From Haliotis rubra (lineage: Eukaryota), in NCBI RefSeq assembly GCF_003918875.1, contig NW_025767134.1:806001-870000 (forward strand): 64,000 bases of DNA, given 5' to 3'. How positions within the stretch are numbered: the stretch's first letter is position 1; every line of letters begins with the position of its first letter. The notes beneath the pieces were generated by a model that was given only the letters and a program-made list of their open reading frames with translations, had not been told where the DNA came from and did no database searches. Made by a program: the position numbers and the translations under genes. Shown here in pieces: positions 11,077-61,518 of the stretch.

Positions 11077-13336
11077 CTAGTCCTTACATGTGTCAGCTTT
11101 TGGACAAAGGTAAGTGGCAGTCACGTTTGACAAGTCACAGTTTTGCTCAATGAATATGATCGAATCCGTTTTCTTTATCAATTCTTGAACCTCTATCGAT
11201 ATAGTCAGGTCACAGTCATCATGGAGTGACTTTGACCTTAAACTATCATCTTTGACATGTTGTGCTATTGCACTCAACAGCGATAACGACGAGGTTGTGT
11301 CAGCTGGTGGTTCTGAAAGGGGTCTCTCGATTACACTTGAGGGTCCACGAAAGATCGCTTGTCCTTCCACTGATAATGGTTTCACGGTTTCATGGTGCTT
11401 TATCCGGAGCTTCACGACTTCGGTGTCAGAGGAACCTGTGTTTGAACACGGCGATGAGGAGTTAATATCTCTGTCGTGTATTTCCCAGTACTTGTGTGTC
11501 CAGTAATCACTGTCGTGGTCATTCCCCGACCTGACTGCATGTTCCGGCTGTGTCCCATCTTCTGGTGGAGATGACCTTGTGGAACCATCTCTGAAAACAG
11601 CCATGACAGTGTGTAGGCTCAAATGCGCATTATGCCCAATGGGAATTGGATTATTTAATAAAATGTATAAATATACGTTTTTGAAATTGTTTTGAAATGT
11701 TGACAGATATATTCATGCGATGAGAACAAGCATTTAATGACACTTATCTGAACTTATCTGACATCGCCAAGTCATAAAACAGTGTTTTGGAACCTGTGAC
11801 ATGATACGGTAGATTTTGTATATAATATTTTTCTCACCTTCCCAAACATTTCGGAAATTGTCGAACGACCAATATGACAATCCCAAGAAGGATAACCATC
11901 GTCAGTATTCCAGTCGTAATTTTAAATGGGAAATTTAGACCTCCTGCAGAAAAGACATAAAACAATAAGACACATTATATAAAATACATTATAGATATGA
12001 ACTTCAGTTAATAGGTTAATATATTATCGTAATGGGTATTTAATCTATCCAATGAAAGCAGTCTCCCCGTCTGAGAAATTTTACTGCTGAAAGGTCGATT
12101 GCATTATATAAATTGTCAGACTCGAGTATATGACTATACTGAATATGACTATGTTAGCACACATTGACGCTGTATGATATCCTGTTGACAATGTATTCAG
12201 TCAGTTCACAAGCCATTTACGGTGTTGTGTTGAAAAGGATCTTTACTTATTACCCATACGGATGAGGAGATCCCCTGTAATATCTTTTGGAGATTTGCAA
12301 AACGTGCACACTTTAGTGATTCTCGACGTTTCGCATTCATAATATTGCATCGATTCATTGATGAATTGACCGTGCTGTAATCGCACTGATTGAGATTTTA
12401 AAATAGTAAAAAAACATACAGGATTTCGATTTGGATGCTTATTTAATGCTTCATTTCATATTTCATTGACAATATGGCGTCGTTTACTTAACATGTTTTG
12501 TAATAAAAAAAAATTCTAATCGTATTTTGTAAACAAACATGGCTACCCAGTTACCGTCAATGACCTGGTCAAGGTGGACGGATGCATTACTGGACGTGGG
12601 ACAGGTAACATCACACTTGTCCCCTGTGTACACCCGGCTCACAGCTGTCACACACTCCCCTGTGTCTTTATCACATCCACCTCTACAGTTAGGGGGACAG
12701 GTAACATCACACTTGTCCCTGCTGTACCCTGTGGCTCACAGCTGTCACACTTCCCTGTGTGATCCTTTATCACATCCACCTCTACAGTTGGGGGGACAGG
12801 TAACATCACACTTGTCCCCTGTGTACCCTGGCTCACAGCTGCCACACTCCCCTGTGTCTTTATCACATCCACCTGTACAGTTGGGGGACAGGTAACATCA
12901 CACTTGTCCCCTGTGTACCCCGGCTCACAGCTGCCACACTCCCCTGTGATCCTATTACATCCACCTGTACAGATGGAGGGACAAGGTGTTCTACAGTGTT
13001 GACCGTAATACTGGGGATTCTGACACGGTCCTGTACAACCATTACCATAACGTTCACACTGTGTACAGGCTGTAGGACAGTTAACTCCACAGTTATCTCC
13101 CTTCTTGCCGGCCACACATCCCTCTGTACACACAACACGGGTGTTGTTCATCTGACAGCGAGAGTTGAGACAGGTGTCTGGACAGTCATGTTGACACTGT
13201 TTACCATAGAACCTGGAGTCCAGACACTGGAGACACTCTCCAGATGACGTCACATTGACACAGCGAGGTGGACACACCACGTCAACACAGGTCACGTTGT
13301 TAACGTCACAATTGCAGGGTGTGCTTTTAGAAGAAA
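11077..13336 (-). CDS. Multi-EGF single-pass receptor gene A (MEGF10/SREC-like); exons 13336-12555, 12385-12254, 11943-11838 (TM), 11590-11077; signal exon not assigned
   Basis: Canonical AG/GT sites with consistent phases 1,1,1,2. Cys-rich repeats CPxNCxGGCDxxTGECxxCEPGYTGDKC; TM ITTGILTMVILLGIVILVV; tail with HKYWEI. Small indels in 93-bp repeats break the frame (real or consensus errors). Confidence 0.8.
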
Positions 13337-14582
13337 CTGTCGAATGGAAAATGAAAATGTAAATGTATGGTATGTGTTCAATGTACAAATTAAACATCTT
13401 CACCGTCAACACAGGTCACATTGTTACCGTCACAGTTGGTGCCAGGAGCTGTGAATTATTTTAAAGCAAACGCTAAGCAACAAAATATTGTTCCTGAATG
13501 TCCGCACATAGTTTACTGAAAACGGCTCTCAATTTAGAAATAATAATACGATACAAAAATGAATAGGATTATTTGATATTATGTACGATAGTTTAGATAT
13601 GTGTGAATGGTGAGCGCCAACGGTAGGGTACACACAGATTTTCATTGCTTCATTCAAATCATGTTCACAGCTATTTTGCCCTTCACATGAAATGGAGTGT
13701 GGTCTGAGGATAGTCAAGACTAGGCATTTCTTTTTGTACTGACGATAACAATTAATGAGGAATGCTAAGAAAACATTAAGTGCATTTAAACCAAACCATC
13801 ACCCTGGTTTTGGTAATGCTCTAATTACATATTTTATCATATTAGTTACATGAAAGTCAAGAAATTGAGCAATATACATTTATACTGACCAAAGTAAACC
13901 GATATAGATATTTTCTGCGCTAGTGTTAATGCGTAAATATAACCCTTTTCTTAACATGCATAACTGCTTTAATGCTGTTGCAAAAACTTCTATTAGAAAT
14001 GTCAAAAGTGGATGAGCGTTTGGGCGGAAACTGCATAGTGATTGCATTCTTTCCAGGTCTTGTTAAAGGAAATCAAACACAATAAGTATCCATTTGAGGC
14101 TTAATGCAGCACCCTGCTTAGAATACAAAAATAAGAATTTCAAGCCAATGCATTTGTTAACTAAAGATAATAAGTTTCAGCAAAATCAATTAAATGCGTC
14201 ATCATGTCACTGGATTTGTTAGTCCATCACGTGATTGTCTGGTTTCACTGCAGGCCACCGTCGTACTGCGCAACACACAACACTTGAACAAGAAACTGTG
14301 CCACCTGAGGGGATTATATGTCAAGCAAGGCCTGCTTACCCTTTCCGCAAACACCTGGGGCGGTATTCTATAAAAGTCTTAAGTCCTTAAAAAGACTTAA
14401 GTCTATGGAAAGTGACTTAAGTTTTTTGAAAAAACTTAAGTTTTGTCTTAAGTCACTTGTTTTTTTCTTAGTCATATTCAATAAAGGTTTTAGACTTAAG
14501 TTTTGTTGTTTTTGGACTTATTTCCTAAGCCTGCATCCATGTAGGCTTAACTATAGGATTTCAACTTAAGTCTGTAACTAAG

Positions 14583-15414
14583 ATGGCTGCCGCACAGCGT
14601 GTTTATTTGCCAAGATCCAACAGATTCAATGATATGCGTGATGAGGAACTTCTTAAGAGATACAGACTGAACCAACAAGGTATTAGATTTTTATTGCAAC
14701 TTGTTGGAGCACAAATACAGCCATTAACTGGACGGAATCATGCAATTGACGCGACAACAAAACTTTTAGTCACTTTGAGGTTCCTGGCAACAGGCAAGTT
14801 TCAATTGTGTAACGGGGATGATCATGGGTTGAGCCAACCGAGCGTTTCACGTGCGATATGCACGACTGTAGAAGCCTTGACCACACCTGCCATGGTGGCA
14901 CGGTTTATACACTTTCCCAGTCCTGCCGAGTGTCAACGTAACAAGGTGGAGTTTCACCGGACAGCCAACTTCCCGGGGGTGATCGGCGTCATTGATGGCA
15001 CACACATACAGATACAGGCACCGACTGTAAATGAGGATGTTTACGTCAATCGGCATCACTACCACAGCATCAACACACAGGTACTTTCTTTACGGATTCA
15101 TATTTTGTGTGATGAAAAATAGTTCATTTCTAAAGACATACATGTACAGTAACGTCTCAAACCTTTCGATCGTCGATTTGGGCGTAACAAGCTTGTAAAC
15201 GTGCCGTGGTTTTGTATTTTTCAGGTAGTATTCGATCCCTTCGATCGCATCATTGACATCGTTGCACGCTGGCCTGGGTCCACACACGACTCGAGAATCT
15301 TGTCCCAGAGTGGCCTTTTCCGGTTAATGGAGGGTAACAACTTGCCAGCTGGGTGTCACCTCCTCGGTGACAGCGGTTATCCGTCCAGACGTTGGTTGCT
15401 AACACCTTTCTTAG
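14583..15414 (+). pseudogene. Harbinger (HARBI1-like) transposase, exons 14583-15080 and 15225-~15414; C-terminal exon not found
   Basis: LVTLRFLATG, FPGVIGVIDGTH, YVNRHHYHSINTQ|VVFD, WPGSTHDSRI, LLGDSGY, LLTPF. The region carrying the third catalytic (Glu) residue is not visible downstream. Confidence 0.88.
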
Positions 15415-15423
15415 GCAAGATTA

Positions 15424-15947
15424 CAGAATACCGGATACCTATCCGCCATTTTTATTTTGATTGCGCATTTATTTTTGCGCACTTCCATTTTGTTTCCTTA
15501 GCAACGGCACGCGATGAATGAAGGCTGTGTTGAAGGAGCGTTCAATATTAAATATTAAATATTAAACAATATTAAAGCTAAAAAAATGTAAGGTAAAGGG
15601 GGTACCCCCCTTTATTTAAAAGCCTTACCTACCTTACCTTACCAATCAAAAATCACTTACCATCAGAGTGTTCCCACACTGTAGAGTTCCTTTTCCCAGC
15701 ATGCATTTGAATAAAATTTCAACACACGATTACTTTTTACTCTGTTTACGTCAGTGAACGCTGTTAAAATCCCCAGTTTAGGTTTCCTAAACCGGAAGTA
15801 AGGTGAGGAATTCGATTTTAACCTTATTTTTTACCTTAAATTCGTATTTTTATTGGATCGCTCGCAGGCTCGCGCTCTCTGTTTCTTCTATATATAGGAG
15901 CCTCACGCGCACAATAGAATGTATATAATTAGGTATCCGGTATTCTG
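15424..15947. mobile_element. MITE nested in the Harbinger
   Basis: 18-bp perfect TIR CAGAATACCGGATACCTA / TAGGTATCCGGTATTCTG with TA flanks; no coding capacity. Confidence 0.8.
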
Positions 15948-17238: not shown

Positions 17239-19777
17239 CTATTCTTCTAATTTCCTTAATTTTGATTGAAGATAAGTTTTCTGTAACTTTAGAACTTCAA
17301 TCTCCAGTAGAAACTTCTCTCTTTCTAGGACTTCTAAGGAAGTTGTTGATATGGATGTTGCTGCTGATAGTGATGCTGATGCTGCTGATGCTGATGATGA
17401 CTGTCCCACCTGTGATGTAGGATAAGGACATCTCACTCCCTCTTGAACTGGATCTAACTCTCTGAAACACAGATGTAGATTATCAGTATTGTATTCATCA
17501 AAATATATCATTACTTTTTAAATCCTGTTTTCTGTTATTATTTTATCTCTTCAAAGATTTTCAGACAAATATAGAAACAAGGTTTATCTAATTTCTAATT
17601 TCAACTTTAATTTTAGGAATTCAAATGGTCAGGTGTACATGGTCAGGGGAACTCATACAATTGTTTCAATATGTTATTACCTACTTTTCAAAGGACTGAT
17701 CTAGCGCTAGGAGCTGGATGAAACTAGAATCCATGGACATCGGCCCAATCCCTGTCAGCACTGTATTCTCCCGGCCTATACAGTCCACCACAGCTTCTGT
17801 AACTGGGCTAATTGGTGTTGGGGGAGGTCCACCACCTGAAAATATTGTCAGACATTAATTATTGTAATTCTAAAAAATTGTTTTTTTCCACTTAATTGGA
17901 ATTACTCATACTATCTAAACATACGGTAAAGGTCATACGAAACATATTACACAACTCACCCAATGTCATCTGCACATATCATATATAGAAGATTACTATT
18001 TTTCGTAACAAATACCATGTTTACCTCATCAAGCAAGATAGAAATTTGATGTTTTTATGATTTTGCAATGAAGACTCATCTGTGTGATATTTTACATTTT
18101 ACAGTTTTCTGCTGGAAAAAGTTTTAAATAGTTGTATGACAGAAAGTAAATTTGATTTATAACGGAGAGTAAAATTGTTAGGGTCAGTAGCAAAATTTGG
18201 GGTCAGTAGTTAAATCGGAACCCCAAGATTTTTTTTAAGGCCCTAACCCCAATATGTTACCCTCCATAGGACATAAATTACAAAATTTACCGGTTGCAGT
18301 TGTTGCATTCTTGAAAGTGCTGTAATTTTTTTTGCCCGCAGACTTAAGGTTTTTCCATTTCTTTATAACCTCATCTCTGCTTCGTTGCTGTCCAATTGAA
18401 TTGATGGTGTCAGTGATTTTCTAAAACAAAAAGTTGTTAACAACTGGATTAATATCACCTCCTTGATTTGAAAATAACAAATTTTTGTTGGGCATTCTTC
18501 AATTGGAGGATGGAAAACGAAAATTATTTTAATTGATGAAAAACTAATATTTCAGTGCATTTAATGATTTCTCTGTTGATTATTTCAAGTCGGAGGGAAC
18601 AAAGGTAAAAAGGTTGCAAAAAATGTATATAATTACACCTTTAAGGCTTAGTAATTGTGTACCATTAATCATAGATATGTGTATTATAAACTGAAGTAAA
18701 GCCCTTTATTGGATTCCAAAACAGAATGTAGAGAATATTACTGTAAATAAACAATCTTACAAACAGCATCCGTCATATCGTAAGAAGGGCATTGTCTTTG
18801 TTTCAATTCAACTATTTTTTTAAATATAGCAATTCGGAGAGGGTAAAGATACCCACCTACATAAAACACTCAAGGGAATACATCAAGCAAATAAGGATGA
18901 AATACACTATTTTCTTTGCACAGTTTGGGCATACTTCAATACAGGTGTCTCTAGAATAATGGAGCACAACACAGTGACACATTGCTCAGTTCCAGTTTTG
19001 GAGTCACATAACCTATCAGTATTTCCCTCACCTTTTGAAAACAGGGATAAAAAATATTTTAATCATTGTGAAAATGTCAAAATTAGGAATGCTATATTAG
19101 CCATAAAACACGTACTCCATGCGCATCTTTAGCCTACACTTACNNNNNNNNNNNNNNNNNNNNNNNNNNNNNNNNNNNNNNNNNNNNNNNNNNNNNNNNN
19201 NNNNNNNNNNNNNNNNNNNNNNNNNNNNNNNNNNNNNNNNNNNNNNNNNNNNNNNNNNNNNNNNNNNNNNNNNNNNNNNNNNNNNNNNNNNNNNNNNNNN
19301 NGGCTGGTCCACTTGAAACTGTTCTCATCAATAACACTGGCACAGGAATGTGCAATTACATATTTTGCATCAGCCTTGACAACGGTAAAAATTGTCGTTC
19401 ATATCTGATCATGTGTATAATTTCTCCTACAACAGCACAGTGATTCTCTTCGCGAAATTCAAACACTGTAATTCCATTACTTTTGTGAGATAATTTACAT
19501 GAAAGACTCTTTCTGATTGGCATTTTAAACTTCATCTGATCAACTGACTCAGTACTGAATCACACAACATTTTACATGATATAAAATCACTCGAGATTTC
19601 ACTCACTTGCCATGTCTCCTGGCGACTCGTGGCCGTCACTCCCTGGGAAAATTTCCCCTCAATCGTTTGCTTGCTCGCCTTGACGAGATCCGCTAATAGG
19701 AGGCACTCATCCTTCGTCCAGTTTGGCTGCCTTTTCCGTGAACTACCACAACTACCGGCGTTATCAACATCTGTCAT
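17239..19777 (-). CDS. Harbinger Myb/SANT-like DNA-binding protein, 4 exons (19777-19607, 18420-18291, 17835-17685, 17461-17239), 224 aa
   Basis: Spliced frame open: RKRQPNWTKDECLLLADLV...RQETWQ|KITDTINSIG...RSRDEVIKKWKNLKS...TGGGPPP...LEREKFLLEIEVLKLQK coiled coil. All GT-AG, 675 nt in total. Confidence 0.87.
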
Positions 19778-20692: not shown

Positions 20693-21492
20693 CAGAATGA
20701 TAACAGTGCTTGTGACCTAAGGGACAGCAGAAAGCCCATGGGAGCCGGAGCCACCTCGCAGTTGGTACTGGGGTTTTCGACGTTCTCCCTTCAGAATGAT
20801 AACAGTGCTTGTGACCTAAGGGACAGTAGAAAGTCCATTGGAGCCGGAGCCACCACGCAGTTGGAACTGGGGTTTCCCACGTTCTCCCTTCAGAATGATA
20901 ACAGTGCTTGTGCCCTAAGGGACAGAAGAAAGTCCATGGGGGCCGGAGCCACCTCGCAGTTGGAACTGGGGTTTCCCACGTTCTCCCTTCAGAATGATAA
21001 CAGTGCTTGTGCCCTAAGGGACAGTAGAAAGTCCATTGGGGCCGGAGCCACCACGCAGTTGGAACTGGAGTTTCCCACGTTCTCCCTTCAGAATGATAAC
21101 AGTGCTTGTGACCTAAGGGACAGAAGAAAGTCCATGGGGGCCGGAGCCACCTCGCAGTTGGTACTGGGGTTTTCCACGTTCTCCCTTCAGAATGATAACA
21201 GTGCTTGTGACCTAAGGGACAGAAGAAAGTCCATGGGGGCCGGAGCCACCACGCAGTTGGTACTGGGGTTTTCCACGTTCTCCCTTCAGAATGATAACAG
21301 TGCTTGTGACCTAAGGGGCAGTAGAAAGTCCATGGGAGCCGGAGCCACCACGCAGTTGGTACTGGGGTTTTCCACGTTCTCCCTTCAGAATGATAACAGT
21401 GCTTGTGACCTAAGGGACAGTAGAAAGTCCATGGGAGCCGGAGCCACCTCGCAGTTGGTACTGTGGTTTTCCACGTTATCCGTTCAGAATGA
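20693..21492. repeat. 99-bp minisatellite, 8 units
   Basis: Unit starts CAGAATGATAACAGTGCTTGTG at 20693, 20792, ... 21485 (792 = 8 x 99). Confidence 0.96.
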
Positions 21493-23801: not shown

Positions 23802-23870
23802 TCTAATTATTTGAGACCTGTGTTTTTTCACGGGATCACTCAACACCACATGTTAGGTGTATATGTGTAT

Positions 23871-24043: not shown

Positions 24044-24202
24044 ACTTCTAAATGACGTTCAAAGACACTCTGTACATCTTGTATATATGAGTTACTGCAC
24101 CCGACTGCATCTCTAAAACCAAGAGTAATCTACAACTCAAAACACTCACCTGGTGTACTTGCACACTTGTATATCATATGAATTTACCTCCGTGTCCAAC
24201 GT

Positions 24203-24448
24203 GGAGTCCAACGCGGAATCGTCGGAGAAATAATGAAGAGGTTTGAAAGTCGTGGCTACAAACTGGTTGCCTGCAAAATGATGCAGGCTTCCAAGGCACA
24301 CCTTGAAAAACATTATGCAGATCTGTCAAGCAAGCCATTCTTCCCTGGCCTTGTCAAGTACATGGCATCTGGACCCGTTGTTGCTATGGTTTGGGAAGGC
24401 AAGCATGTAGTAAAGATGGGCCGTAAGATGCTTGGCGCCACAAACCCA
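24203..24448 (+). pseudogene. NME: Processed nucleoside diphosphate kinase (NME1/2-type) fragment
   Basis: [82 protein letters not shown]; intronless, both termini and the catalytic HGSD missing. Confidence 0.92.
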
Positions 24449-25328
24449 ATCCGTATATTTACTGATGAAATGCGATGTGATGTTAACGTCATTCGAATTC
24501 ATAATATGACGTCAGATTGAAGTGAAGTCATGACAGAAATAACGCACTGTTAAGGTCAATCGACATTTGTGTTTTTCTAAGAGTGTGGTCGTTATCAGTT
24601 GGTATAGTAGCATTCGTGTCACAATCTCGTTCTTTCAACATATTATAATGAAGTTTGTGATAGGCGTTCAGTAGGGGAAAAACATAACAACATCGCCGCT
24701 TTATACCGACAACAGCTGTAGAAGAGCTGTTTAAGAGCTACGTCTTGCCCCTTTATCATATGAACACCATATAGATTATGTATAGAAACAAATATATGTT
24801 TAGACCAGACAGGAGTAATATACAAAGATGATTGTGGGCGACGAAGCCAATTTATTAATATTACTGTCATGGCAACTCAGTCGTTACTGGAATGTTTCCA
24901 ACTGTTTATTCTACAAGCCAAAGATTAACGAAACAATAGTATACATTTATCCGGCCTATAAAAGATAGTACACAATGCCATGACTGAATCTACATATGTA
25001 TATGTCCTGTATAGATATCAAACAAAATACAATATCACAATAGAGCAACATGCACGCATTTTGTAATATCTATACTGTTATGTGCCGGTATTATTTATTG
25101 TGTATATGTATATAAGTTTGATTACTGTTGGTGAGAGGTGCATATTAATTACTGTTTCAATGATATAATCACTGTTCTTGTATCACATTACCTTGAAATG
25201 TGTACTGCAATCTATTTCCTACTGCCATAGAGACACCTTGGTATGAATTTGTGAACTAAGTTCATTTTAGAATACAATTGATAATTATATCACATTGCTA
25301 TGTTGCTTGTTGCCTTCAGATCTAGTTC

Positions 25329-25533: not shown

Positions 25534-26033
25534 NNNNNNNNNNNNNNNNNNNNNNNNNNNNNNNNNNNNNNNNNNNNNNNNNNNNNNNNNNNNNNNNNNN
25601 NNNNNNNNNNNNNNNNNNNNNNNNNNNNNNNNNNNNNNNNNNNNNNNNNNNNNNNNNNNNNNNNNNNNNNNNNNNNNNNNNNNNNNNNNNNNNNNNNNNN
25701 NNNNNNNNNNNNNNNNNNNNNNNNNNNNNNCTGATTCCTGGTTAACTTCTTAGTTTCAACCCGGGAAGCAACACGTAACACACTGCATTGTTTTAGGGGC
25801 AAAACCATTAACGTATACTAGGTACTGACGACTGTATTGCACTCTTTTGTGTGTTATACTGATTTCATGAACTCCTGTAAGTATTCATACATGACCTTCC
25901 CTCTCCGTGGGAAATACAAGCGTTCAAACACAATACATATTGTGAATGACTCATCAACCCCGAACTCCGACCCGGCTGAATTCTGGCTGCAGGAAAAGAC
26001 ACAATAGACTTCTAATTTTGTGACCCATTAGTA

Positions 26034-28263: not shown

Positions 28264-30332
28264 TTATTCATCACCAAGGTCATCATCCGCGTCGCCTGTG
28301 CGCTGTGTTGTTAGATACCTCACCTGTGCATTAGCAGAGGCAGCTATTAATTCCAGTAACTCGAGAGACTCACTGCTTGTCTGCATATCTTCATGTGTAT
28401 CTGTTTGTCCATTAACACCGTGCAACCTCGAGCCTGACATGGGTTCATAGATATGTTCCTGATGCCAGTCTGGTCCGTCTACCACACCTACTTTGTCACC
28501 ATCAGCCATCGCACCTGGAGTATCAATAACCCTTGGTTTAATATCTGGTACAGCATCAATCTCTTCCCTCATCCTGTTCCCTTGGCTCGGCTGTTCATGT
28601 GATGATTCTTTAAGGCAAGCCACCCTCTGTTCAGGTCTGGTGGTCAACAAAACTTGTTCCCTGCAGCCAGTGTCCACGTCCTGATCGTTGATCTCATAGT
28701 ATTTATGCGCCAAATAGGTACTGGATCCACTACCTTCGGCTTGGGTGACTGTTACAGCATCCTGCTGGGACCTGTGTATCAATCAAACGACCACTGAAGC
28801 ATATATTGCTGACCATTTATAGTTAACACTGTCAAATCCTCCACACTGTGCAGGCAAATATGTAATCGGTATTCTTAAGGAAACTTAAAACACCTCATTT
28901 ACCTTCTTCGTTTTTTATAAATCTTCTTAACAGTCTGAAGAGCACCGATCAACAGAAATGTTGACAGGATGGAACACACAATCATCAGGATGTGGACAGT
29001 TTTCAGACCATCTGGTTCCCCTGGTGAGGCTGTGGTGGCATCTGAAACGTTTCATATACTACATTTTACTTTCATATGATAATGACTCTAAAGGACACAG
29101 TGTTTCTAAAGGATGTCAGTGTTTCGCTACATCAATCCAAGTAAAAAAATGTCTTTCAATGTTTTCAAAATGATTTGCATGATAGTATATGAAGCTACGA
29201 CACGTGAAACATGGGTGGTACACGTAGCAAATGTGCCCAAGTCATGTATCAAACAGTGATATACCCTACCCTATGCACTGACAATTGATGGCAGGACAAC
29301 GTTATGCACGATATGTTTGGACAGCAAGAAGAAAGGTAATGCAGATGATATGTAAGAACCTTAGATTTTTGTTCGAAATTTTCTGACATATTCTGCCCTT
29401 ACCTGTGTGACAGTCTTCGCCGTGACATTTTCCATCGTCACACTCGAAGTAGCTCTCATCGCACCGTGTACACGTCTCTTTATGTTCGTCGCATTCTACA
29501 CAAGATTGTGATGAGCAGGTAACATTGCAGAACGTTCCAAGGGAACCTAATATACAGGCACGACATTTCCCTATATCCTTATCACATCCGTCTCTACAGG
29601 TGGATGGACAAGGCGTTCTACAGTGTGGACCGTAATACCGGGGATTCTGACATGGTCCTATGCAATCATCTCCATAACGTTTACACTGTGTACAGGCTGC
29701 ATCACAGTTCGCACCACAGTTGTCTCCCCTTTTGCCAGCAATACATCCCTCTGTACACACAACCAGGCTGTCCGTCTGACAGCGAGAGTTGAGACAGGTG
29801 TCTGGACAGTCATGTTCACACTGTTTACCGTAGAACCTGGAGTCCCGACACTGAAGACACTCTCCAGGTGACGTCAGATTGATACATCGTGGCACACACT
29901 CTCCTTCAACACAAACTCGGTTATCGTCCTCACAGTTGGTACAGAGTCTACTGGAAAACGCACGTGTTGCCACTGTAACGACAAAATGAACACTTGTAAC
30001 ATCTTCTGAGAAGTTTGTCACATTAACATACATGTGAATCAGTAACTGTCGGTCTAAAGATCCTTGTCCACAGGTTAAATATGAGTTACGCAGACACTTA
30101 TATCTTTTTTAAACAATGCATTTTCTGTAACAATTATTATGCCCTGTTTATGATATATACACAAATATATACTTTACATTACCCGATCTGACATACGTTC
30201 CTATTATTAACAGTGTTTACAAATTCACGATTTATGTATAATTGACCTAAATATATAGATATAATCTAAAAGGTATAAACAGGTACCTGTTATCAAGGTC
30301 ACCAGTGTAATCGTCACCGCCAACGTTGCCAT
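28264..30332 (-). CDS. Multi-EGF single-pass receptor gene B, intact, 420 aa; exons 30332-30287, 29972-29403, 29041-28903, 28771-28264
   Basis: Signal MATLAVTITLVTLIT, EGF exon, TM VHILMIVCSILSTFLLIGAL + KKIYKKRRR, tail with HKYYEI and IYEPM. GT-AG with phases 1,1,2; 1263 nt open. Confidence 0.88.
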
Positions 30333-32775
30333 GGTCAACGGTGCGCTGTTGAAAAACAGGCAATACTTGCTTGAAAAGTATATTGACTGTCATTAATACA
30401 ACATTGGTTGCTAATGGTATATATGAAAGGATGAAAAGGTGAATCCTAGCATCAAATTAGAAATACAGAAACGACATGCTATAATAACCTGGAACAACTA
30501 TTACATTTGCTATCTTACCTCGCAGGTGGGTGTAATATTGGTGCATCGCCCACGTGAGTTAACTGTGAGTTCGGAATACTTCCTCTCACTACCCTTGACC
30601 TAGGGCCGTGTGGGTTTTGTTGGAGATCATGGATCAGTTTCATGCACAATGCAAACACACCAGGAAGCATTTTGTGTACGTATGTTTCACCCGATATATC
30701 TCCTTTATACCAATTCGATAGGTGAAGTAAATTACTTTCTACATCATGATTGGAAAGGTAAAGAAAATTATAAGAAGCAAATCGGTGTATTTGATTGTAC
30801 GTTAGAATGGTGAATATGGTTCGCAAACACCTGGTATTATCCGTATCTGGTAGTGATTCAAGAAAAATAAAGCGACCTTTCTATAGTCACAAAGACGCCA
30901 AAATAGGAGTCGTTAGTCCGATCCCGACTACATCATGAGCGTGATGATATCGGGTGTTTGGGAAACGGTGAACGTATCACGATCGGTGGCACTCGTCGTA
31001 AACACAGAAAGAGGCAAGTTGATGGTTTACCTGGAAAACACAGGGTCACTTGTAGTCGTATAGATAACTCGTATGTCAGACTCTGGTGTCATTACCGATT
31101 TCTTGTGATTATGGAAATGGTTTTGTCGCTTTTGTTCCAAGGTCGAGAACGAAAGTTGCTGTCCTCTGTAGGTGCAGCATCATACGTGTCATGAACCAGT
31201 TAGATAGTCAATATACTCAATGTAGCATGTTAATGTTTTTGAATGTGATACACAGGCTAGCTGATTGCTGTGTTCAGTTACAGATTATCAAGTCTCTTGG
31301 GTTGTTTTTTCTAGCGCACAATAAATCAAGATGTAAATAAGGAAGAAGAACCAAACACCAATACAACGGGGAATACAAATACAACAGGCCTTGTTTCCTC
31401 TTATGACAATTTACATTTTAGATTTGTTCCCTTATGTTATACCATACATGAAGTAGCCCAGTGAGTGTTACTGACGACGCAGCCTCGTTATGATGTAAAG
31501 TCTGACCACCTGAAAACGTACTGGTCAGTTTTTGTTGGTGCCGCTCATATATACAACACACCAAATACGACAGAATACCGTACTTGAGAGGGTACATTTA
31601 ATGAAAGATCATTCATCACAAGCTTCTCACTCACACGAATTCAGTGTAAAAACAAAAACAAACTGGTATTATACAAAGAATAATTTCATTAAGACTATAT
31701 TCGGGTTTTACATTAATACAAATGACTTGAAAGTATTTACAATGTTAGTATGTGCAAAAAAAACAATTTACAGTATATTTATAATGTGCGTGTGTGATTC
31801 TTTAAAAACTTGTATTGTGTTTCCCTGCATGACAGTAATTGACGCCATCTTTTGTTTTTAACAAAGCGTTAGGTAAAAAATTACACCTTTTGTACAGACC
31901 ACACATGTTTTTGTCGAGTAGGAGAAAGGTGTATCTCGAAAGGGCTATACTTGCTCCTCCTTGCTAACAACACCTCATATCCATATACTGAGGATTCGAT
32001 AGGGGAAACATTAAATATTCGTTAGAAATTGAAAACAGTTCAACAGGCAGCTTTATTTTATACTGGAAGAATATAATATTAAAACCGAAAAGCAAAGCGC
32101 CTGGTATACTGACACACTGGTGTAATTAAGTCGGGTGGGTAGTTTCCATACAATATCCGTCTAATCACAGTTTTACAGGTGGTGTGTAGTCTTCTGTGTT
32201 TCAGAAAAAAGTGGGTTTCTTAAACAAGCAACTGCAGCCAGGCGGGTAACACGAGATAAAACCTGTTTCCATTTTTCTGATCAATGCTATTGCAAAGTGC
32301 GAGTTTTGGGGAGCAGATAGTGGTACAATCTGTGATGATCGCATTATAATGTCAGTGTCAAAGCAGAATATTACGGAATTTACGGCGATTGGCTTAACTT
32401 ATATAAGGTACAAACACGTATGAAGACCAACGATACACGTATCATCCTTGTCAAACTACGGACATTCATAAGACAGCTAAAACATAGCAAGATTATTTAA
32501 GCCTCCAAGAAAATAACTACATTTAAAAGATATTAAATTCATGTTATTGCACATATTATAAGCAATAGAGTTCAGTGACATTTGGGCTGAAATTCCCTCA
32601 GCCATTCAAGGGTAGGTCCTTGTATTTTTTGTGGTCACAGTTGGCTGATATTGTCCGCAGTATGTTCGGCGCTGTTATCCGTGATATCACTGATTTTTAA
32701 ATCAATTGGGAACTTTAAAAGTAAAATAATGAAAGCCGTAAGTTGCTTTCACATTTACACTCTGTCTAACACATT

Positions 32776-38100: not shown

Positions 38101-38240
38101 AGTAGACAGACGTTTGCAATCTATCACTTGTTTCAGCTAATATGACAGTATCGTCAGCGTAAAGTAATATCAACAATTCATAAAGATACCAAGCTGGTCC
38201 TCAATAAGCCTATTTACATATTCGAGGCCAGTTACATCAT
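38100..38240 (-). mobile_element. Short inverted RT fragment of a related LINE
   Basis: Minus strand encodes LLILLYADDTVILAETSDRLQ; also present in the duplicate at ~43100-43240. Confidence 0.7.
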
Positions 38241-38277
38241 GTTCATAAATAAAACATTCAAGATTATACAAGTATGA

Positions 38278-38910
38278 ATAACTGGAGAATATGACGTTGT
38301 TGAATTAGTTTTTGCAACTAACTGTAGAACAGGATGTTTTGATTACTTAAGATTATTTGAAGATGAAAGTGAAACAGTATTTATGCAATACAGTATAAAC
38401 AAAGTAAATGGAGAACGGGACGTTTTATAATAGTTATTTTTCCCATGACTTTTGTTGTTGTTGAATTGTTTTTACAAATAACTGGAGAACAGGATCTTTT
38501 ATTGCGTTTAAGATGAAAGTGAAAAGTATTTATAAAATTCAGTATAAACAAAGTTTATAACTGGAGAACAGGATGTCTTATAATAGTTATTGTTCCTAGT
38601 ATGACTTTTTGTTGTTGTTGAATCTGTTTTTGCAAATAACTGGAGAACAGGATCTTTTATTGCTTAAGATGAAAGTGAAATAGTATTTATAAAATTCAGT
38701 ATAAACAAAGTATATAACTGGAGAACAGTATGTTTTATAATAGTTATTGTTCCATGACTTTTGTTGTTGTTGAATCGTTTTTTGCAAATAACTGGAGAAA
38801 AGGATCTTTTATTGCTTAAGATGAAAGTGAAAATAGTATTTATAAAATTCAGTATAAACAAAGTATATAACTGGAGAACAGGATGTTTTATAATAGTTAT
38901 TTTTCCCATG
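38278..38910. repeat. AT-rich higher-order tandem repeat built from ATAACTGGAGAACAGGAT subunits
   Basis: Recurrent ATAACTGGAGAA / AAGATGAAAGTGAAATAGTATTTATAAAATTCAGTATAAACAAAG blocks; fewer units in the copy at 43275-43605. Confidence 0.85.
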
Positions 38911-39271
38911 ACGTTTTTCCTATGACATTTTTCCGGTCACCCTTCAAGATGGCTACCTGTATGCCAAGAGCAAGGTGAAAGGAGAAAATGATAATGTTCA
39001 AGTGACTTTCTAATAAGAGTCATCTGTGGACTGAGAAACATGTGATGTAAAATAATATGGTGCTTGGTCTCATATGTTTGTTGGTACATGTATATAAATT
39101 ATTGGTTTTGACAATATTCACAAGTAAATGTGGATGTGGCAAATATATGTTAATGTACATATATGTTGATGTAGTACGTCTTAATTTAAAAATCATACTT
39201 CATTACATGAATTGATAAAACTATAGTTAACACCTCCACGTTGTCTTTTTATCTGGGCACATACCATTATT

Positions 39272-42944: not shown

Positions 42945-43968
42945 GTAAAAGTACCCCGGCTTATATGTTATACGGCGAGACTGGACGCCTGTCTTTAAGT
43001 ATTAATATCTAAAATAGAGTATTATGATATTGGTGTAAAATTTTAGATAATGAAAACCAAAATAGACTTACACGTAACTTGTACACTAAATTATTAGCAG
43101 TAGACAGACGTTTGCAATCTATCACTTGTTTCAGCTAATATGACGGTATCGTCAGCGTAAAGTAATATCAACAATTCATAAAGATACCAAGCTGGTCCTC
43201 AATAAGCCTATTTACATATTCGAGGTCAGTTACATCATGTTCATAAATAAAACACTCAAGATTATAAAAGTATAAATAACTGGAGAATATGACGTTATTG
43301 AATTAGTTTTTTTGCAAATAACTGAAGAACAGGATGTTTTTATTACTTAAGATTGTTTGAAGATGAAAGGGAAATAGTGTTTATACAATACAGTATAAAC
43401 AAAGTAAATGGAGAACGGGACGTTTTATAATAGTTATTTTTCCCATGACTTGTTTGTTGTTGTTGAATTGTTTTTCGCAAATAACTGGAGAATGGGATCT
43501 TTTTATTGCTTAAGATGAAAGTGAAATAGTATTTATAAAATTCAGTATAAACAAAGTATATAACTGGAGAACAGGATGTTTTATAATAGTTATTTTTCCC
43601 ATGACGTTTTTCCTATGACATTTTTCCGGTCACCCTTCAAGATGGCTACCTGTATGCCAAGAGCAAGGTGAAAGGAGAAAATGATAATGTTCAAGTGACT
43701 TTCTAATAAGAGTCATCTGTGGACTGAGAAACATGTGATGTAAAATAATATGGTGCTTGGTCTCATATGTTTGATAGGTACATGTATATAAATTATTGGT
43801 TTTGATAATATTCACAAGTAAATGTGATGTGGCAAATATATGTTGATGTACATATATGTTGATGCAGTACGTCTTAATTTCAAAATCATACTTCATTACA
43901 TAAATTGATAAAACTATAGCTAACACCTAATGTTGTCTTTTTTATCTGGGCACATACCATTATTATCA
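42945..43968. repeat. Near-identical duplicate of 37947-39275
   Basis: Both start GTAAAAGTACCCCGGCTTATATG and end CACATACCATTATTATCA. Confidence 0.93.
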
Positions 43969-48307: not shown

Positions 48308-51300
48308 TCATTTTCCCTGGACAGTTTCATCTGGAGTAATGTATTTGACAGTGATATTTGACAAGTCATTGTTTTGCTCTATGAATAGGATTGAACTGGT
48401 CTTTGTAGGGAGCCCCAGGGTGCTTGAAGATACTGGTCTGTCGTGTATATCACAGGAATGTGGTATATACTGATGAGTGGAACCTGATGCAACATCAGTA
48501 GTCATCAATACTGGCATTGATGGTGATCTGGCAAGGTCTTTTATTGGTGAGGATGCAATGTTGGAAACACCTGACATCTCTGACGTAACCAAAGAAGGTT
48601 CATTTCCGCTTGTCATGTGAGAATCCTTATGCGCAGACACAAATGATGACCGGAAGTCACGTGACGTCCCTTGTCCAAGTGACCAGGACCGTGGTTTGGG
48701 TGACTCTTGTCTTGGGTCGTGTTTAGGATGTAATGGAGGAAGAGGGGGTTGTACAGACAGCCTAGGTGGAGAAGGTCCAGGTAGACAAGAATCAGTGTCC
48801 AAGTCCTTGTCGTATATTTCCGAATACTTGTGCGACTGGTAGTCACTGTTGCGTGATTGTCTGGAGCCATTGCTGTCCCATCTTCCACCTCCGGTGTTTG
48901 ATGAGGAGACACACATCAGTCTACAAAACAAAATATACTTCCAATAATGCTTCGCTAAGCTGTAAAGTATACCAATGATTGTTAGTTTGTTACCATTGCA
49001 TTAACATTGTCATTGTATGACGATTGTCAGGTGACATATCTTTCAAAGATTTAGAAACATGCAACAAACTGAAGTTTAAAGAAATTGTTAATTTGTCATA
49101 GAACGCGCTTTAATGCCAGAGAATAACCAGTCTATATTATCTGTGGAAACAGATTCCACCACTGAGTCACCCAGTTTCAATCGGACTTTACTATTTCCTT
49201 CAGCTGGGTACAAAGTGCGCTGTGTACTTGTGGGTGTCATTGGGTGAAGCAATCACATAACCTAATTCTTCGCATTCAAATAAACCAGTGTATTGTGGTA
49301 AGAGAGGAAAATGGAAAATTGTGTTTCAAACTTATAGGTTCTGTAAATTGTTCCGATCATTGTACAGTCTCTGTTCATCACCTACCGGTTTCTCTTGTGT
49401 GCCCAGAAGCCCAGTACCAGTAGCAGTAATGTGGAGGCTCCAGCTATTGTTCCCATGACAATCACCAAAGTGTGGTCAGCGTTCCCTGCAACAACAGTCA
49501 TAATTCAACAGTTTGTTACTGGGTCTCATAGGACATTCTTTGACTCAGTGCTCATCCCATGTACATTTTCAAAGATTAAAATCATTTATATTTTTCTCAA
49601 ACTGCTTTAAATTGAATAAATCACTGTAGGCAGAGAATACATATACATATATCTACACGGGTCAATACAAACTTTAAACACTTCATGACGAGCCTTGGTG
49701 TGTTAGACATGAAAATACTCTAGGGTGAAATTATATTTAATTTCCAAATTAATTCCTCACTTCAGTTCCGTTTGTAAACAGTAACAACACGTATCCCGAA
49801 TGTGCAAAGTACAATTCACCATCGCCATTGGCATATAGACAAGTGATGTCATGGCAACCGATGACGTCGCAGTAGTCTACAAGGCATTTTCATGCACACT
49901 AACTCGGAAGTTATCTCCTTGATAAATAAATCATCCCGTTATACGGAAACAAATAACGTTACATTTACAAAAGGTATATTTACAAGTTTGAATGATCAGT
50001 TTCGATATCGAGCTTTACCATGACTATGACTCACGCTTTTGACAAGGTGACGTGTTGCATGTCTGTCCTGCGCAGGGCGAACATATCTCATCGCAGTACT
50101 TCCGGCTGAAGTTGGTGGCACACTCGATACACAGCCCTGTCTCTCTGTGACAACCATGGCAGTTGACGGGGCAAGGGGTGGCACAATAGTCTCCATGAAA
50201 ATTAGAATTTGAGCAAAGACCGATGCATTGCCCCGAATATCGATCACATACCTTACAGTTTTGATTGCATGATTCATTACAAGACCTACCCCACATCCTT
50301 GGAACGCATTGCATGCACTTCCCTGTTTGTTTGTGACACGTGTCACACTTGGGTGGGCACGAGATGCTGCACATGGCTCCATGATAGTTCTGATTTATGC
50401 ATGGACCGGTACACTGAGACCTACCGATGTCGAAGCTTCTGCAGTTCGGGAGACATGTCTTTTTACACGAAGTACTATCACAATTAGTCATATTCTCGTC
50501 ACACAATCCCAGACAGTACCGTTCAGTACATTTCAGGCAGCCTTCGCCATACTGATCGCAACGTTCACAGTTATCAGGGCAGGAATGATTGCAATATCTA
50601 CCTCTATACCCAGCTTCACAACCATTACAGTATCCTTTGATTGTTGTACATCCATCCTTTAAATTACAGTGAGAGGGACATAGTTTGCTACAATTTGGAC
50701 CGTAATACCGGGCATTGCGACACAACCCTGTACAACTATCACCATAACGTTCACACTGTTTACAGGCTGTTGGGCAGTTCAATCCGCAGTCGCCTCCCCT
50801 TCTACCAGCCACACATCCCTCTGTACACACAACACGGGTGTTGTTCATCTGACAGCGAGAGTTGAGACAGGTGTCTGGACACTCTAAATCGCAGTGTGTT
50901 CCATAGAACCGGGAGTCGACACAGGTCCCGTTGTTGTCACAGTTGGGGCAGACTGTGCTGGTATAAACAACTGTGGATAGTAGAGAGATGTTTGTTGGAT
51001 AGACACACATATACTACCCATCAAAAGTTTAGACTAGTGTAAATGTAGCCACTTACTTCAGTCAACTGTTCCAAACCTAATTTTCAAAATATTCCATTCA
51101 GGTTAAAGGTACTGTTTACACATGAACAAATGAATTGTAAAAACAAATTCGTGACGTTGAAAAAATTATTGTCATGAGTTCAGTAAATGATGAAAATCAG
51201 TGAAAATTGGTGAATGCTTAACAACACTTTTCACCAAAATGCAGCTGTTCACATGAACGATATTTGCATATGCTTGTTAGCAATTTGATGCATGATCCTC

Positions 51301-52453
51301 GTACAGTTCATCTGCATAAAGTTTGCAGTTGGTTCCCCAAAGTTAGTGAAGAAATTCATCTTCGATGTAACCATATATATATACATAACATATAGTGAGT
51401 GCGTTAGGTGAGTCTAAACTTTTGATGGGTAGTATATAAGGAGTAATTGCATTCATACTGGTGGAAAATGGACGTGAATGTTATTGTTAAAGTCCCAATT
51501 AAACAGCTGCAAACAAGATACTAGTATGTATGTTTAAGCCTTTAACAACTATGTAATGAAACCATTCCAGTCTGGGTAGGACAGACCATTGACTGATATT
51601 ATGAGCCATACCGTGGATGACACTTCATCATTCACGCAACGTATGGGTACCAAGACACGCCATCTTTCACACAACCTGACATCCATACCGTATGGGTACC
51701 AAGAGACGCCATCTTTCACACAACCTGACATCCATACCGTATAGAATCCAAGACACGCCCTTTACCGTATACCGACGGGTCCAAGACACGCCATCTTTCA
51801 CACAACCTGACATCCATACCGTATGGGTACCAAGACACGCCATCTTTCACACAACCTGACATCCATACCGTATGGGTACCAAGACACGCCATCTTTCACA
51901 CAACCTGACATCCATACCGTATGGGTACCAAGACACGCCATCTTTCACACAACCTGACATCAATACCGTATGGATTCACGCCATCTTTCACACAACCTGT
52001 ATATGGTACCAAGACACGCCATCTTTCACACAACGTGACATCCATACCGTATGGGTACCAAGAGAAGCCATCTTTCACACAACCTGACATCCATACCGTA
52101 TGGATTCCAAAACAAGCCATCTTTCACACAACCTGACATCCATACCGTATGGTGCCAATACACGCTATCATTCACACAACCTGACATCCATCCATACCGT
52201 ATCGGTGCCAATACACGCCATCATTAACACAACCTGACATCCATCCATACCGTATCGGTGCCAATACACGCTATCATTCACACAACCTGACAACCACCCA
52301 ATGATGCCATTGCCGTTTTCTGGTACGACAAGTATAGGTTGTTCGGGACCTACTCCATCCATTGATTTCTATGTCACATTTACAGAGAGACGTTAAGGAA
52401 TAATTACCTGTTGACATACAGTGTGAAAGGAGAATCACCGCGAGAGACAACAT
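48308..52453 (-). CDS. Multi-EGF single-pass receptor gene D, intact, 564 aa; exons 52453-52408, 50970-50035, 49485-49386, 48920-48308
   Basis: Signal MLSLAVILLSHCMST, 312-codon Cys-rich exon, TM LVIVMGTIAGASTLLLLVLGFWA, tail with HKYSEI and SSILFIEQNNDLSNITVKYI; 1695 nt open after splicing. Confidence 0.9.
51012..51434. mobile_element. Tc1/mariner-type MITE in gene D intron
   Basis: 24-bp perfect TIR TACTACCCATCAAAAGTTTAGACT, TA flanks. Confidence 0.9.
51606..52291. repeat. ~49-bp minisatellite, about 13 units, in gene D intron
   Basis: Unit ATCCATACCGTATGGGTACCAAGACACGCCATCTTTCACACAACCTGAC. Confidence 0.95.
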
Positions 52454-57881: not shown

Positions 57882-60800
57882 TCACATTTCATAAGAAGCA
57901 CTATCTCTGTCAACTTTTTTCGCTGTCAAATATCGGACATTCACGTTTGACAAATCACAGTTCTCTTCAATGAAAATGATCGAATCGGTTCTTTCGGTCA
58001 TCCTTTGGATTTCATCTGAAAACGCGATCCCAGTGTCACTCTGGACAGATTGGCGCTGAGAATCTCTCTCATTCTCAGAAAGGGCTGATGCAGCTAACAG
58101 TGTCAACAAAGACTCTCCTGCATCACCATTTCCTTCTGCAGAATCTATCAGCTCAGAGTCGCTCCCTGCAGGTTCGCCTTGCCCAGGCGTTGGTGGAAGG
58201 GTGTGAGACAACGCAACTGGACCTTGACCATCGGATGGTGCGCTGCCTGCAGTTCTTACTCGGGGTCTGTCTGTAGGAGGTAATGCAGGTCTCACAGACT
58301 CTTCAACATGGTCAGACTGCCCGGCAACCAAGTTGACATCAATCTCCCAGTATCTGTGCGCAATGTTATCGCTGTGGTTCCTGCTGGAGCCATCAGAACA
58401 GTGTACTCGAGTCAAGCGTCTGCAAAGTTGTCATCACGTGTATTAATTAGACTGTATCTCTTCACATTATTACATTGTGTATACTAAGATGAATATAACA
58501 CAAAATAGGTTTATCACATCAGTTATCAAGACAAATGCACTGATATGATTAATGTCAATCTAATACAATATTCATGTCAAGCTTATTGCCTAGACTGATG
58601 CCAAATTGTCCTCTATATTCCTGTCCTGATACCAACTTATCCACGTCCTCCCATATATTCGACAAAAGGAAATATTATAAACAACTCGTTTTTAGCTCAG
58701 GTAGCTCAGCTTCACATGTTTTTACTCAGTCACTCTACAAGAGCATCTCATTATATTCGCCTCTTACTTCTGTCAGCAGTAATTAGTCTTTTCCACAAAT
58801 AATCAATAATTCTGATTAACACGAAGTTACTTATGTATAATGTATGTTCTAAAACTGATACCTACCTCTTGAATATGAGAAGCAATATAACACAGCATAG
58901 AACCCCTGCTACTGATCCAATGGAAATTACTAAGATGTGATCAGACGAACCTGCAAATGGAAGGGCAGTTCGGTAAACCATGACACGGACATTTATAAGG
59001 TGAGAAAGAAATTGAGTTATCGTCCAGCGTAATGTTATCGAACTTTTGTAGCGACACATATGCCTTAAGCAGGTTTTATAAAAGTGCTTGTCTACTACGA
59101 TAACACGCCAGATGTTAACATACTGGGCCAAAACATACTTTACTGATTCCGAGCCGGCCAGGGTGACGTACCAACTACCAGGGGATCGAACCACCTTCCA
59201 CTCTATCTACTACGACACAGAGTTGATCGCATACATATTGTGATTAAAACGTCACCAAACCAGGGTAATTAAACCATAATTCTGATCAAATTGTTCGTAA
59301 ATATATCATATATGTGTGTTGTTTTGAGTGATATTAGCTAATGTCAGGCAATAAAACTGTACTTTCAATCAAGAAGATCACAGAGCATTATACGTTACCA
59401 TTTCAACAATGAAAATATATCTGTCATTCTATTTGTGCCACTTAATTATATTAACTGGCTTCAACCCATAAAATCATTGTTCTATATCCTTGATATTTCA
59501 TTAATGTGAAGGTTTTCAGTTTGTCTATTTGTCAAGACTATCCACTAATAGGCTTTGTCGGTGTTCACTGTTATTGATTACCACACAAGCAGAAACGTCT
59601 TTACATCAAAAGTCTATTCCTGAGCTGGTACCCAGTAAAAGGCTGTCTAAGAATGGTCAAATGTATGAAACTTTCATTAATTGTTTTTCCGGATTATTAT
59701 GGGCTGCAATTGTTATGGATCGAGATGTAGGATATGGAGGAATTCACACAAGCGTCTTTATCGTGAAAATTTATAATTTAATAAACGTATCAACAAGGAA
59801 GACGGTACCTCTTTTCAACCAATTGGAATGAAGCATTCTTCAACCTCGAAAGAATGAATAATAACTGACGCGTTTTGTGTGAAAACGAGTTAATTAAACA
59901 TGTATTAATAGGGAAAAGCTCCCTCTTATTAAACAATCAATATCAAACTTTTTTTCAATGTCGTGCAAGAATGAATAATAACTCACGTGTTTTGCAAGGC
60001 AGTCTGTGGCAAGCGTCCCCAACACACGGAGAACACACCTCGTCACAGTAGGTTCTGCTGTAGCCTTGGACACAGCTCATACACAGTCCAGTGTCCTTGT
60101 CACAACCGTCACAGCTGACAGGGCAAGGAGTCGAGCAATTCCCTCCATGATAGTTAGGATCTCGGCAAGCTCCGATACACATGTCCACAAAACGATCACA
60201 GACCATACAGTTAGATGGGCATGACTCGTTACACAGTTCACCTCTCACACCTGGTACACAGTTGAGGCATCTCGCAGAGTCTTTCTCACATTTGGCACAG
60301 TTATCTGGACATGGAATGGTGCATATCTTTCCATAGTAGTTGGCGTTGATACAAGGTCCATTGCACTGGTTTTGTGTGAAGTCATTAATTATACAGTTTG
60401 CTCGGCATGTTGTTTTACAAGATGTACTGTTACAGTTATCTCCCTGCTCGTCACATCCACCCTTGCAGTACCCTTCAACACAGTGTATACACTCGCCTGT
60501 TTCCCTGTCACAGTCTCTACAGTTGGAGGGACAGGTAATGTTACAGTGCTTCCCTCTGTACCCCGGCTCACAACTGTCACACCCTTTATCACATACCCAA
60601 CTGTCACACTCCCCTGTGATCCCATTACATCCACCTTTACACAGCAGGTGTCACACACTCCCCTCCTGTGATCCTATCACATCCACCTCTACAGTTGGAG
60701 GGACAAGGTGTTCTACAGTGTTGACCGTAATGCTGGGGATTCTGACACGGTCCTGTACAACCATCACCATAACGTTCACACTGTGTACAGGCTGTAGGAC

Positions 60801-61518
60801 AGTTCACTCCACAGTTATCTCCCTTCTTGCCGGCCACACATCCCTCTGTACACACAACACGGGTGTTGTTCATCTGACAGCGAGAGTTGAGACAGGTGTC
60901 TGGACAGTCATGTTGACACTGTTTACCATAGAACCTGGAGTCCAGACACTGGAGACACTCTCCAGATGACGTCACATTGACACAGCGAGGTAGACACACA
61001 CCGTCAACACAGGTCACGTTGTTACGGTCACAGTTGGAACAAGGTGTGCTTGTAGAGGAAACTGTAAACAGTGAGGTGGTTTGCAATATAAATTCTGATA
61101 TTATTGAAAGACATTAAGTCGGACTTAATTTATTTTCCTATTACGATTGAAAGCATTCTGATCAAAACAAGTAACCATTTGTAAAGTGTATTGTTCGGCC
61201 ATTAGCAGGTTCTGTAGTATCTGTTGACAGTCTTGAAATCTGGAATCATATCTCCTGGGTCATCACACTGGTATGTATTCTAATATGCCAAATACATACT
61301 GTGTTTCCGCCAGGAAAACACTCAGTCGTGAAAAACTATCAGTTCAACGACATGTTCATTGGTATGAGAAAAGCATGACACTGTTAACACGAATATACAG
61401 TGAAGATTGTGACGGGGAATGGACTACGACAGTGCATCACGGAACGCATGAATGAAAGACATGTATACAAACCTTGCGATGCAGCCCACAGTAGGATAAG
61501 CCTCAAGACATTAACCAT
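57882..61518 (-). CDS. Multi-EGF single-pass receptor gene E; exons 61518-61473, 61061-59987, 58950-58866, 58419-57882; one frame break at ~60640-60665
   Basis: Signal MVNVLRLILLWAASQ, long Cys-rich exon, TM ILVISIGSVAGVLCCVILLLIF, tail with HRYWEI and TDSIIFIEENCDLSNVNVRYL. The break lies in jumbled 93-bp repeats. Confidence 0.82.

Follow-up and report, generated by a model that had tools for sequence, protein, structure and literature searches.

A stretch of 64,000 nucleotides from the abalone Haliotis rubra (contig C2244, NW_025767134.1, positions 806001-870000; hereafter the window, whose coordinates are used unless contig kb are given) carries part of a tandem array of genes for cysteine-rich, single-pass membrane proteins that share an N-terminal module, here called the head. 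We consider it likely that this abalone-only array joins a head homogenised by gene conversion to old, separately evolving cytoplasmic lineages, and that the head is a putative ligand-binding tip whose homogenisation would keep tail-type and phosphatase-type members tuned to one ligand.

A shared head block in an abalone gene array

A six-frame motif scan revealed six copies of the head motif in the window:

~13214, minus strand, copy A
~29838, minus strand, gene B
~34503, minus strand, gene C
~39946, minus strand, pseudogene (sixth copy)
~50911, minus strand, gene D
~60936, minus strand, copy E

An earlier note on this DNA had described five co-oriented genes. The common orientation was confirmed; the count was not, as a sixth, frame-shifted copy lies at 39230-40074 and the assembly shows damage in three of the five "genes". 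Two of the six copies (B and D) are demonstrably intact as assembled. We searched the whole assembly (1.38 Gb) and then mapped locally. At least 21 head-bearing loci were found at 682-921 kb of contig C2244 (approximately 250 kb; the contig ends at 928 kb), with further head-bearing loci on contigs C2260 and C2454. The window holds a slice of about 50 kb of this array of at least 21 genes. Protein searches returned close relatives only in Haliotis species, with weak matches in Patella, Mactra and Saccostrea. The family appears restricted to abalones, which agrees with the lineage-specific origin proposed earlier. Literature searches found no paper on this abalone cluster.

We compared the heads of A, C and E with those of other members of the array, including A', E2, R1, R3 and R5. 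Three head blocks of the window lie in or near one group of very similar heads:

12980-13320, minus strand, A head block; DNA 97-100% identical to the heads of E, E2, R1 and R3
60702-61042, minus strand, E head block; synonymous divergence (dS) 0.02-0.04 to A, A', E2, R1, R3 and R5
34269-34609, minus strand, C head block; near the homogenised group and drifting, with dS 0.07-0.11 and nonsynonymous divergence (dN) 0.06

A, E and other genes, separated by up to 185 kb and including some with a protein tyrosine phosphatase (PTP) domain, are 97-100% identical over about 340 bp of head-coding DNA, and at least nine genes share the head. In a core of 78 codons, dS was 0.00-0.07 and dN at most 0.04 among R1, R3, R5a, R5b, both heads of A', A, E and E2; genes of this low-dS set, spread over the same 185 kb, lie on both strands. 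From about 100 nt ahead of the start of the core to 240 nt past it, pairwise identity stayed at 97-100%; within some 150 nt on the upstream side of the core, in the intron, it had fallen to approximately 0.4, a level at which the sequences no longer align. In the comparison of E with E2, dS was 0.043 over 129 codons of head versus 0.75 in the stalk background of the same exon (Fisher p = 1e-10). The same pair has a second low-dS tract of about 240 nt within the stalk-coding part (59982-60641 versus contig 882-883 kb; dS 0.035 versus 0.75), which indicates that exchange was not limited to the head. The heads of R1 and R3 are identical, whereas the amino acid identity of their PTP regions is 57%.

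Not all heads of the window belong to this group. Those of A, C and E differ pairwise at 0-10 of the 78 residues, and those of B and D, which stand outside the homogenised group, are only about 80% identical to them; for D, the 78-codon core gave dS 0.35-0.44 and dN 0.14 against the homogenised heads, and dS 0.35-0.5 against A, C and E. The statement that all five carry nearly the same head can thus be kept for A, C and E.

The tails tell a different history. The tail tree contained supported cross-species orthogroups for A, B, D, E and E2 to E4, with the following tail orthologs:

A and A': P0008 (H. asinina)
B: P0011 (H. asinina)
D: P0002 (H. rufescens)
E: P0019 (H. cracherodii)
E2, E3 and E4: P0004 (H. 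asinina)

The tail ortholog of C is P0009 (H. cracherodii). Orthologs defined by their tails differ at 7-13 of the 78 head residues; among H. rubra heads the number is 0-2, even where orthogroup and type are not the same. Within each species, species-specific head residues are common to tail-type and PTP-type proteins. The earlier note had proposed a comparison of separate trees; head and tail trees were indeed incongruent, and divergence was strongly non-uniform along the genes. Together, the low head dS, the unaligned introns, the old tail orthogroups and the species-specific head residues point to gene conversion. Judged from these comparisons, the head block appears to be kept alike by conversion (concerted evolution) and not by purifying selection alone.

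Strong purifying selection on a binding domain, acting in an ordinary birth-and-death family with no exchange between paralogs, could also keep heads alike. The heads of B, D and the members F, G7, G8 and H10 from outside the window behave in this way: they cluster by orthogroup, whatever the species, at dS 0.2-1.8 and with dN/dS far below 1. In addition, H. asinina heads differ within the species as much as between species. However, purifying selection leaves synonymous differences in place, and head dS is 0.00-0.07 compared to 0.75 in the same exon; moreover, the homogenised block has sharp edges and the species-specific residues are common to different orthogroups. We regard selection without exchange as quite improbable.

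The cytoplasmic parts represent old lineages that evolve separately: non-catalytic tails with YxEI and IIFIE...V.V.YLTP motifs, the distinct tail of C and, beyond the window, a single PTP domain. Conversion has repeatedly copied the block of about 340 bp between a subset of members, so that the head stays near-identical within a species and changes in concert from one species to the next. Of the window copies, A, E and to a lesser extent C belong to the homogenised set, with B and D outside it. Provided that the head is a ligand-binding tip, homogenisation would keep tail-type and phosphatase-type receptors tuned to the same ligand.

Intact and damaged copies

The B product is 100% and the D product 99% identical to a RefSeq protein of Haliotis rubra, and RefSeq proteins P0012 (B) and P0001 (D) map without mismatch:

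28267-30332, minus strand, gene B, intact; RefSeq LOC124289769 (P0012, 420 residues)
B coding exons, minus strand: signal 30287-30332; head/EGF 29403-29972; transmembrane (TM) 28903-29041; tail 28267-28771
48311-52453, minus strand, gene D, intact; RefSeq PEAR1-like isoform X2 (P0001, 564 residues)
D coding exons, minus strand: signal 52408-52453; head/EGF 50035-50970; TM 49386-49485; tail 48311-48920

Each consists of four coding exons with GT-AG introns in phases 1, 1 and 2. For B, the splice joints 29041^29403 and 29972^30287 were seen in contigs from two small RNA-like runs (GT..AG, minus strand). The exon plan that had been proposed for all five genes is therefore established for B and D, with RNA joints for two B introns; A and E are frame-broken. 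Intron 1 of D contains a 49-bp minisatellite of about 11 copies (51640-52296).

Copy A lies in a segmental duplication of 12-20 kb and approximately 94% identity between 784.8-797.3 kb and 800.2-820.1 kb of contig C2244. The duplication carries one H-type and one A-type gene, and window positions 1-14098 hold its right half. This right copy is split by a long interspersed nuclear element (LINE), and both of its genes, H12 and A, are damaged. It follows from the duplication that A is a decayed copy of the intact, two-headed A' (contig 793.8-796.6 kb).

11080-13415, minus strand, copy A, decayed duplicate of A'
A parts, minus strand: tail exon 11080-11592; TM exon 11837-11947; frame-shifted repeats 12598-12983; head 12990-13343

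The A stalk is built of EGF-type tandem repeats of 92-99 bp (period 92, 7% indels). These contain at least five indels, one a C6-to-C5 change and the others complex, with stops in the alternative frames. Compared with A', about 350 bp have been lost, including the exon end and the native donor. What had been read as an extra stalk exon of A is the same 92-99 bp repeat continuing in another frame. The lack of a signal exon in A, also reported earlier, was reproduced with a strict 46-nt scan and then a relaxed one. The strict scan recovered the signal exons of B, D and E and none for A, C or the pseudogene; the relaxed scan gave a good candidate for C only. Just upstream of the A head exon, at 13405-13452 on the minus strand, lies a short duplicate of the head-exon start in another frame, with a peptide like TAPGTNCDGNNVTCVD. 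Within the duplicated segment, long frames of an inserted non-long-terminal-repeat retrotransposon (endonuclease, reverse transcriptase and a gag-like frame with a CCHC knuckle) occupy 3206-8132 on the minus strand.

In copy E, the frame breaks directly after the head, with a TAA at 60640-60642, and the stalk resumes in another frame from 60641:

57885-61518, minus strand, copy E, frame broken after head
E parts, minus strand: signal 61473-61518; head 60640-61062; stalk in other frame 59982-60641; TM 58865-58936; tail 57885-58370

A short intron bridging the break was considered and rejected, since the sole GT..AG pairs give 25-40 nt.

Gene C retains an open frame with a degenerate stalk:

32779-35400, minus strand, gene C, open frame, degenerate stalk
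C parts, minus strand: candidate signal exon 35361-35400; head and degenerate stalk ~33894-34620; TM ~33599-33693; tail 32779-33120

Its repeats carry at least four indels, and the frame is still open to a plausible phase-1 donor, AAG|GTAATA, at 33893. The candidate signal exon from the relaxed scan resembles that of the H. cracherodii ortholog. One RNA contig lies on the C tail exon (32773-33017), and no C splice joint was seen among the RNA contigs.

The sixth copy is a pseudogene:

39230-40074, minus strand, sixth copy, pseudogene with many frameshifts and stops

Over 1.7 kb, upstream DNA included, this copy matches C at 83% identity; it has no TM or tail exon, and repeats and a retroelement follow downstream. 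Its region is flanked by two blocks with a 153-bp satellite (37947-39275 and 42945-43968; 92-95% identical), and a reverse-transcriptase fragment lies nearby at 36115-38011 on the plus strand.

No RefSeq proteins for A, C or E were found in the length ranges searched, which shows that no such model turned up and does not mean that these genes are dead. One RefSeq model at this locus, LOC124289762 (P0020, 810 residues), begins with the E signal and head exons, continues in an A' exon (795.6-796.2 kb) and has its last exons, which encode PTP, at 745-749.5 kb. Joining exons from three genes over about 122 kb, across many other genes, it is very probably a chimeric prediction. As a practical warning, RefSeq models of this cluster are partly chimeric and half of the window copies are damaged as assembled.

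Two runs of undetermined bases (N) interrupt the window:

19144-19301, N gap, intergenic, A-B spacer
25534-25730, N gap, intergenic, A-B spacer, 2.5 kb from the B 3' end

Neither comes closer than 2.5 kb to an exon, and no reading frame therefore relies on either. The spacer between the top exon of A (ending at or before 13415) and the lowest exon of B (from 28267) measures 14.8 kb, a length that is inexact and may hide an element.

The likeness of the heads, the breaks in A, C and E, or both could be assembly artefacts, produced in a hybrid assembly by collapse, chimeric joins or polishing with multi-mapping short reads, in which case the genes would be intact and more divergent. All breaks lie within the 93-bp tandem repeats, one of them being the C6-to-C5 homopolymer change. 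In addition, other species have intact orthologs of A, C and E, and LOC124289762 is chimeric at this same locus. However, this assembly also contains, in many neighbouring paralogs, repeat arrays that are long and stay perfectly in frame, which argues against systematic assembly error, and the defects of A include the 350-bp deletion and complex indels. Furthermore, three further assemblies, each built independently, also show heads that are alike within the species and carry species-specific residues. In independent Illumina contigs, head words stood at 12-40 times the flanking or single-copy depth, which speaks against a polishing artefact. We judge artefact to be an unlikely explanation.

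Several observations nevertheless weigh against homogenisation by conversion, or against the damage as assembled. H. asinina heads are far less homogenised, with 8-10 within-species differences; the head tree has 78 columns and few supported forks; and the evidence for concerted evolution across species comes from protein sequences only. In principle, paralogs could have been blurred when a long-read assembly was polished with short reads. No DNA contig of reads covers the C repeats at 33900-34100, and tandem repeats, where the breaks lie, are prone to error. The breaks in A, C and E may be real damage or assembly error.

A and E have heads that are free of stops and hardly differ from working heads, in copies that are otherwise broken. 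This raises a further alternative: damaged head-bearing copies (A, E, the pseudogene and E4) might be kept as a reservoir of donor sequence with which working genes are converted, in the manner of pseudogene-templated diversification. The effect seen is, however, homogenisation and not diversification, and passive receipt of conversion explains intact heads in broken copies equally well. Transfer may have run in either direction. We hold a donor role to be very improbable.

The window also contains elements that belong to none of these genes. Two adjoining frames at 14529-15518 (plus strand) resemble, by eye, a candidate PIF/Harbinger-type DDE transposase. A 99-bp tandem repeat of eight copies and 95% identity at 20693-21492 has frames open on both strands (322 residues on the minus strand). 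Isolated between the N gaps, at 24182-24517 (plus strand), is a nucleoside diphosphate kinase-like frame (by eye) that may be a retrocopy or a lone exon.

Cytoplasmic tails and phosphatase sisters

The earlier note had stated that the signal peptides, stalks, TM segments, tails and introns of the five genes barely align. This applies to signal exons, introns, TM segments and tail middles, which do not align between the copies. The tails as a whole are more closely related than this implied. Those of A, B, D and E are homologous, with a common juxtamembrane YxEI motif, and those of A, D and E have at their C terminus a conserved motif of the form IIFIE..DLSNV.V.YLTP, which recurs in most tail-type proteins from four species of abalone. 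Both tail motifs (YxEI and IIFIE...YLTP) were found in abalones only. Between them, the tail middles are disordered and can be aligned at only about 27% identity. The tail of C forms a separate class with a conserved YxN, and BLAST found no similarity between C-type tails and the other tails. The window thus contains two tail classes, not five unrelated tails. An alignment by eye of the C-tail C terminus to the IIFIE motif was supported by no test and was rejected.

A motif scan of the five window tails detected no immunoreceptor tyrosine-based inhibitory (ITIM) or activation (ITAM) motif and no NPxY or YxxL. No TM segment of the window contains K, R, D or E; that of C has one His. The tails are 114-203 residues long, with a Ser, Thr and Pro fraction of 0.20-0.35 and no Pfam domain, and an Atlas search with a tail returned no usable match.

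Outside the window, the five leftmost loci (682-753 kb of contig C2244, 53-124 kb to the left) combine the same head with PTP exons. The PTP domain (PF00102) was identified in these sister proteins with Pfam E = 1e-77 to 1e-83. P0043 maps exactly as a 13-exon head-plus-PTP gene, and in both P0020 and P0043 the active site reads HCSAG.GRTG and a WPD loop is present. The remaining array loci are tail-type genes, and no PTP exon is present within the window. The proposal that one head serves several outputs gains from the five PTP genes with the same head and loses within the window, where there are only two tail classes. As a putative function, one head with several outputs fits the architecture of the array.

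The presence of tyrosine-motif tails and receptor phosphatases in one array suggests opposed phosphotyrosine signalling. An extended form of this idea, which we put forward as doubtful, would make the array an invertebrate counterpart of paired receptors. One ligand would be bound by the conserved head; tails phosphorylated at YxEI and YLTP would stand against an R3-like phosphatase that erases the signal; and a fast-changing microbial or self ligand would drive head replacement throughout a species. In this extended form, a head-only product of E, if made, could be a soluble decoy. An immune role of the array is pure conjecture.

Relation to known receptor families

A Pfam scan of every large window exon gave no family at E <= 1. 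The sole Pfam match was a sub-threshold one to EGF_TEN in full-length relatives (PF25024, 17-20 bits versus a cut-off of 65). No EMI domain was detected at E <= 0.1-1 by Pfam in all exons and eight full-length relatives. We modelled the head with AlphaFold from a 32-sequence alignment (predicted local distance difference test [pLDDT] score, 70.6). The best PDB match to the model was the human SCARF1 N-terminal fragment 8hna (Foldseek E = 1.6e-4, probability 1.00, template modelling score [TM-score] 0.33), followed by Notch and Delta EGF arrays, and the fold search returned only EGF-array proteins. A profile search of PDB sequences with the head found nothing at E <= 0.01. The family appears to comprise cysteine-rich (EGF-type), single-pass membrane proteins that are SCARF-like in build.

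SCARF1/SREC-I resembles the abalone proteins, whose repeats are predicted to be EGF-like, in its N-terminal Cys-rich array without EMI, its single TM segment and its long, mostly disordered Ser/Thr/Pro-rich tail. As in SCARF/SREC proteins, the single TM segment of the abalone tail-type proteins is followed by a long tail that is rich in Ser and Pro and lacks a catalytic domain, and NCBI labels several abalone members SREC-like. In contrast to SCARF1, the abalone repeats have CxxC-type spacing, match no Pfam EGF family at threshold and gave no sequence-level structure match; the tail motifs are found in abalones only, and sister genes carry a PTP domain.

The earlier note had drawn a parallel with MEGF10, CED-1 and Draper. 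These proteins and PEAR1 are multi-EGF single-pass receptors with tyrosine-bearing tails, as the abalone proteins appear to be, and the NCBI name of the B and D relatives comes from this group. The abalone proteins, however, lack EMI, NPxY, YxxL and ITAM. Since both EMI and NPxY are missing, they are not members of the MEGF10/Draper/CED-1 group.

Vertebrate paired receptors such as Siglec-5/14 and Siglec-11/16 have ligand-binding domains kept alike by gene conversion. The likeness to such receptors that was suggested earlier extends to clustered genes, a near-identical short block of putative ligand-binding exon sequence, differing TM and cytoplasmic parts, and concerted evolution within species. 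With regard to the tip, tail-type and PTP-type genes on one contig have heads 0-2 of 78 residues apart with dS at most 0.07. There are also differences: the abalone ectodomain appears to be EGF-type and not Ig-type, and the contrasting partner is a receptor tyrosine phosphatase. Paired receptors of the KIR, LILR and Siglec type combine an activating member, with a short tail and a charged TM residue, and an inhibitory one with an ITIM; in the abalone proteins of the window there is no ITIM, ITAM or charged-TM adaptor logic. Moreover, the head is shared by at least nine genes and not by a pair. If conversion of a common tip is correct, a logic known from vertebrate immune receptors, a conversion-identical tip with differing signalling ends, would also have arisen on a different scaffold in a mollusc, with a receptor tyrosine phosphatase as the opposing partner. 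With a head of 340 bp, a pair of conserved tyrosine motifs and sister phosphatase genes on one contig, the array would be a testable system.

Finally, the phosphatase sisters can be compared with the R3-subtype phosphatases (PTPRJ/H/O/Q and Ptp10D). Like these, they have one TM segment and a single PTP domain, and NCBI names them after R3 members. Unlike these, they carry the shared, apparently EGF-type head in place of fibronectin III repeats.

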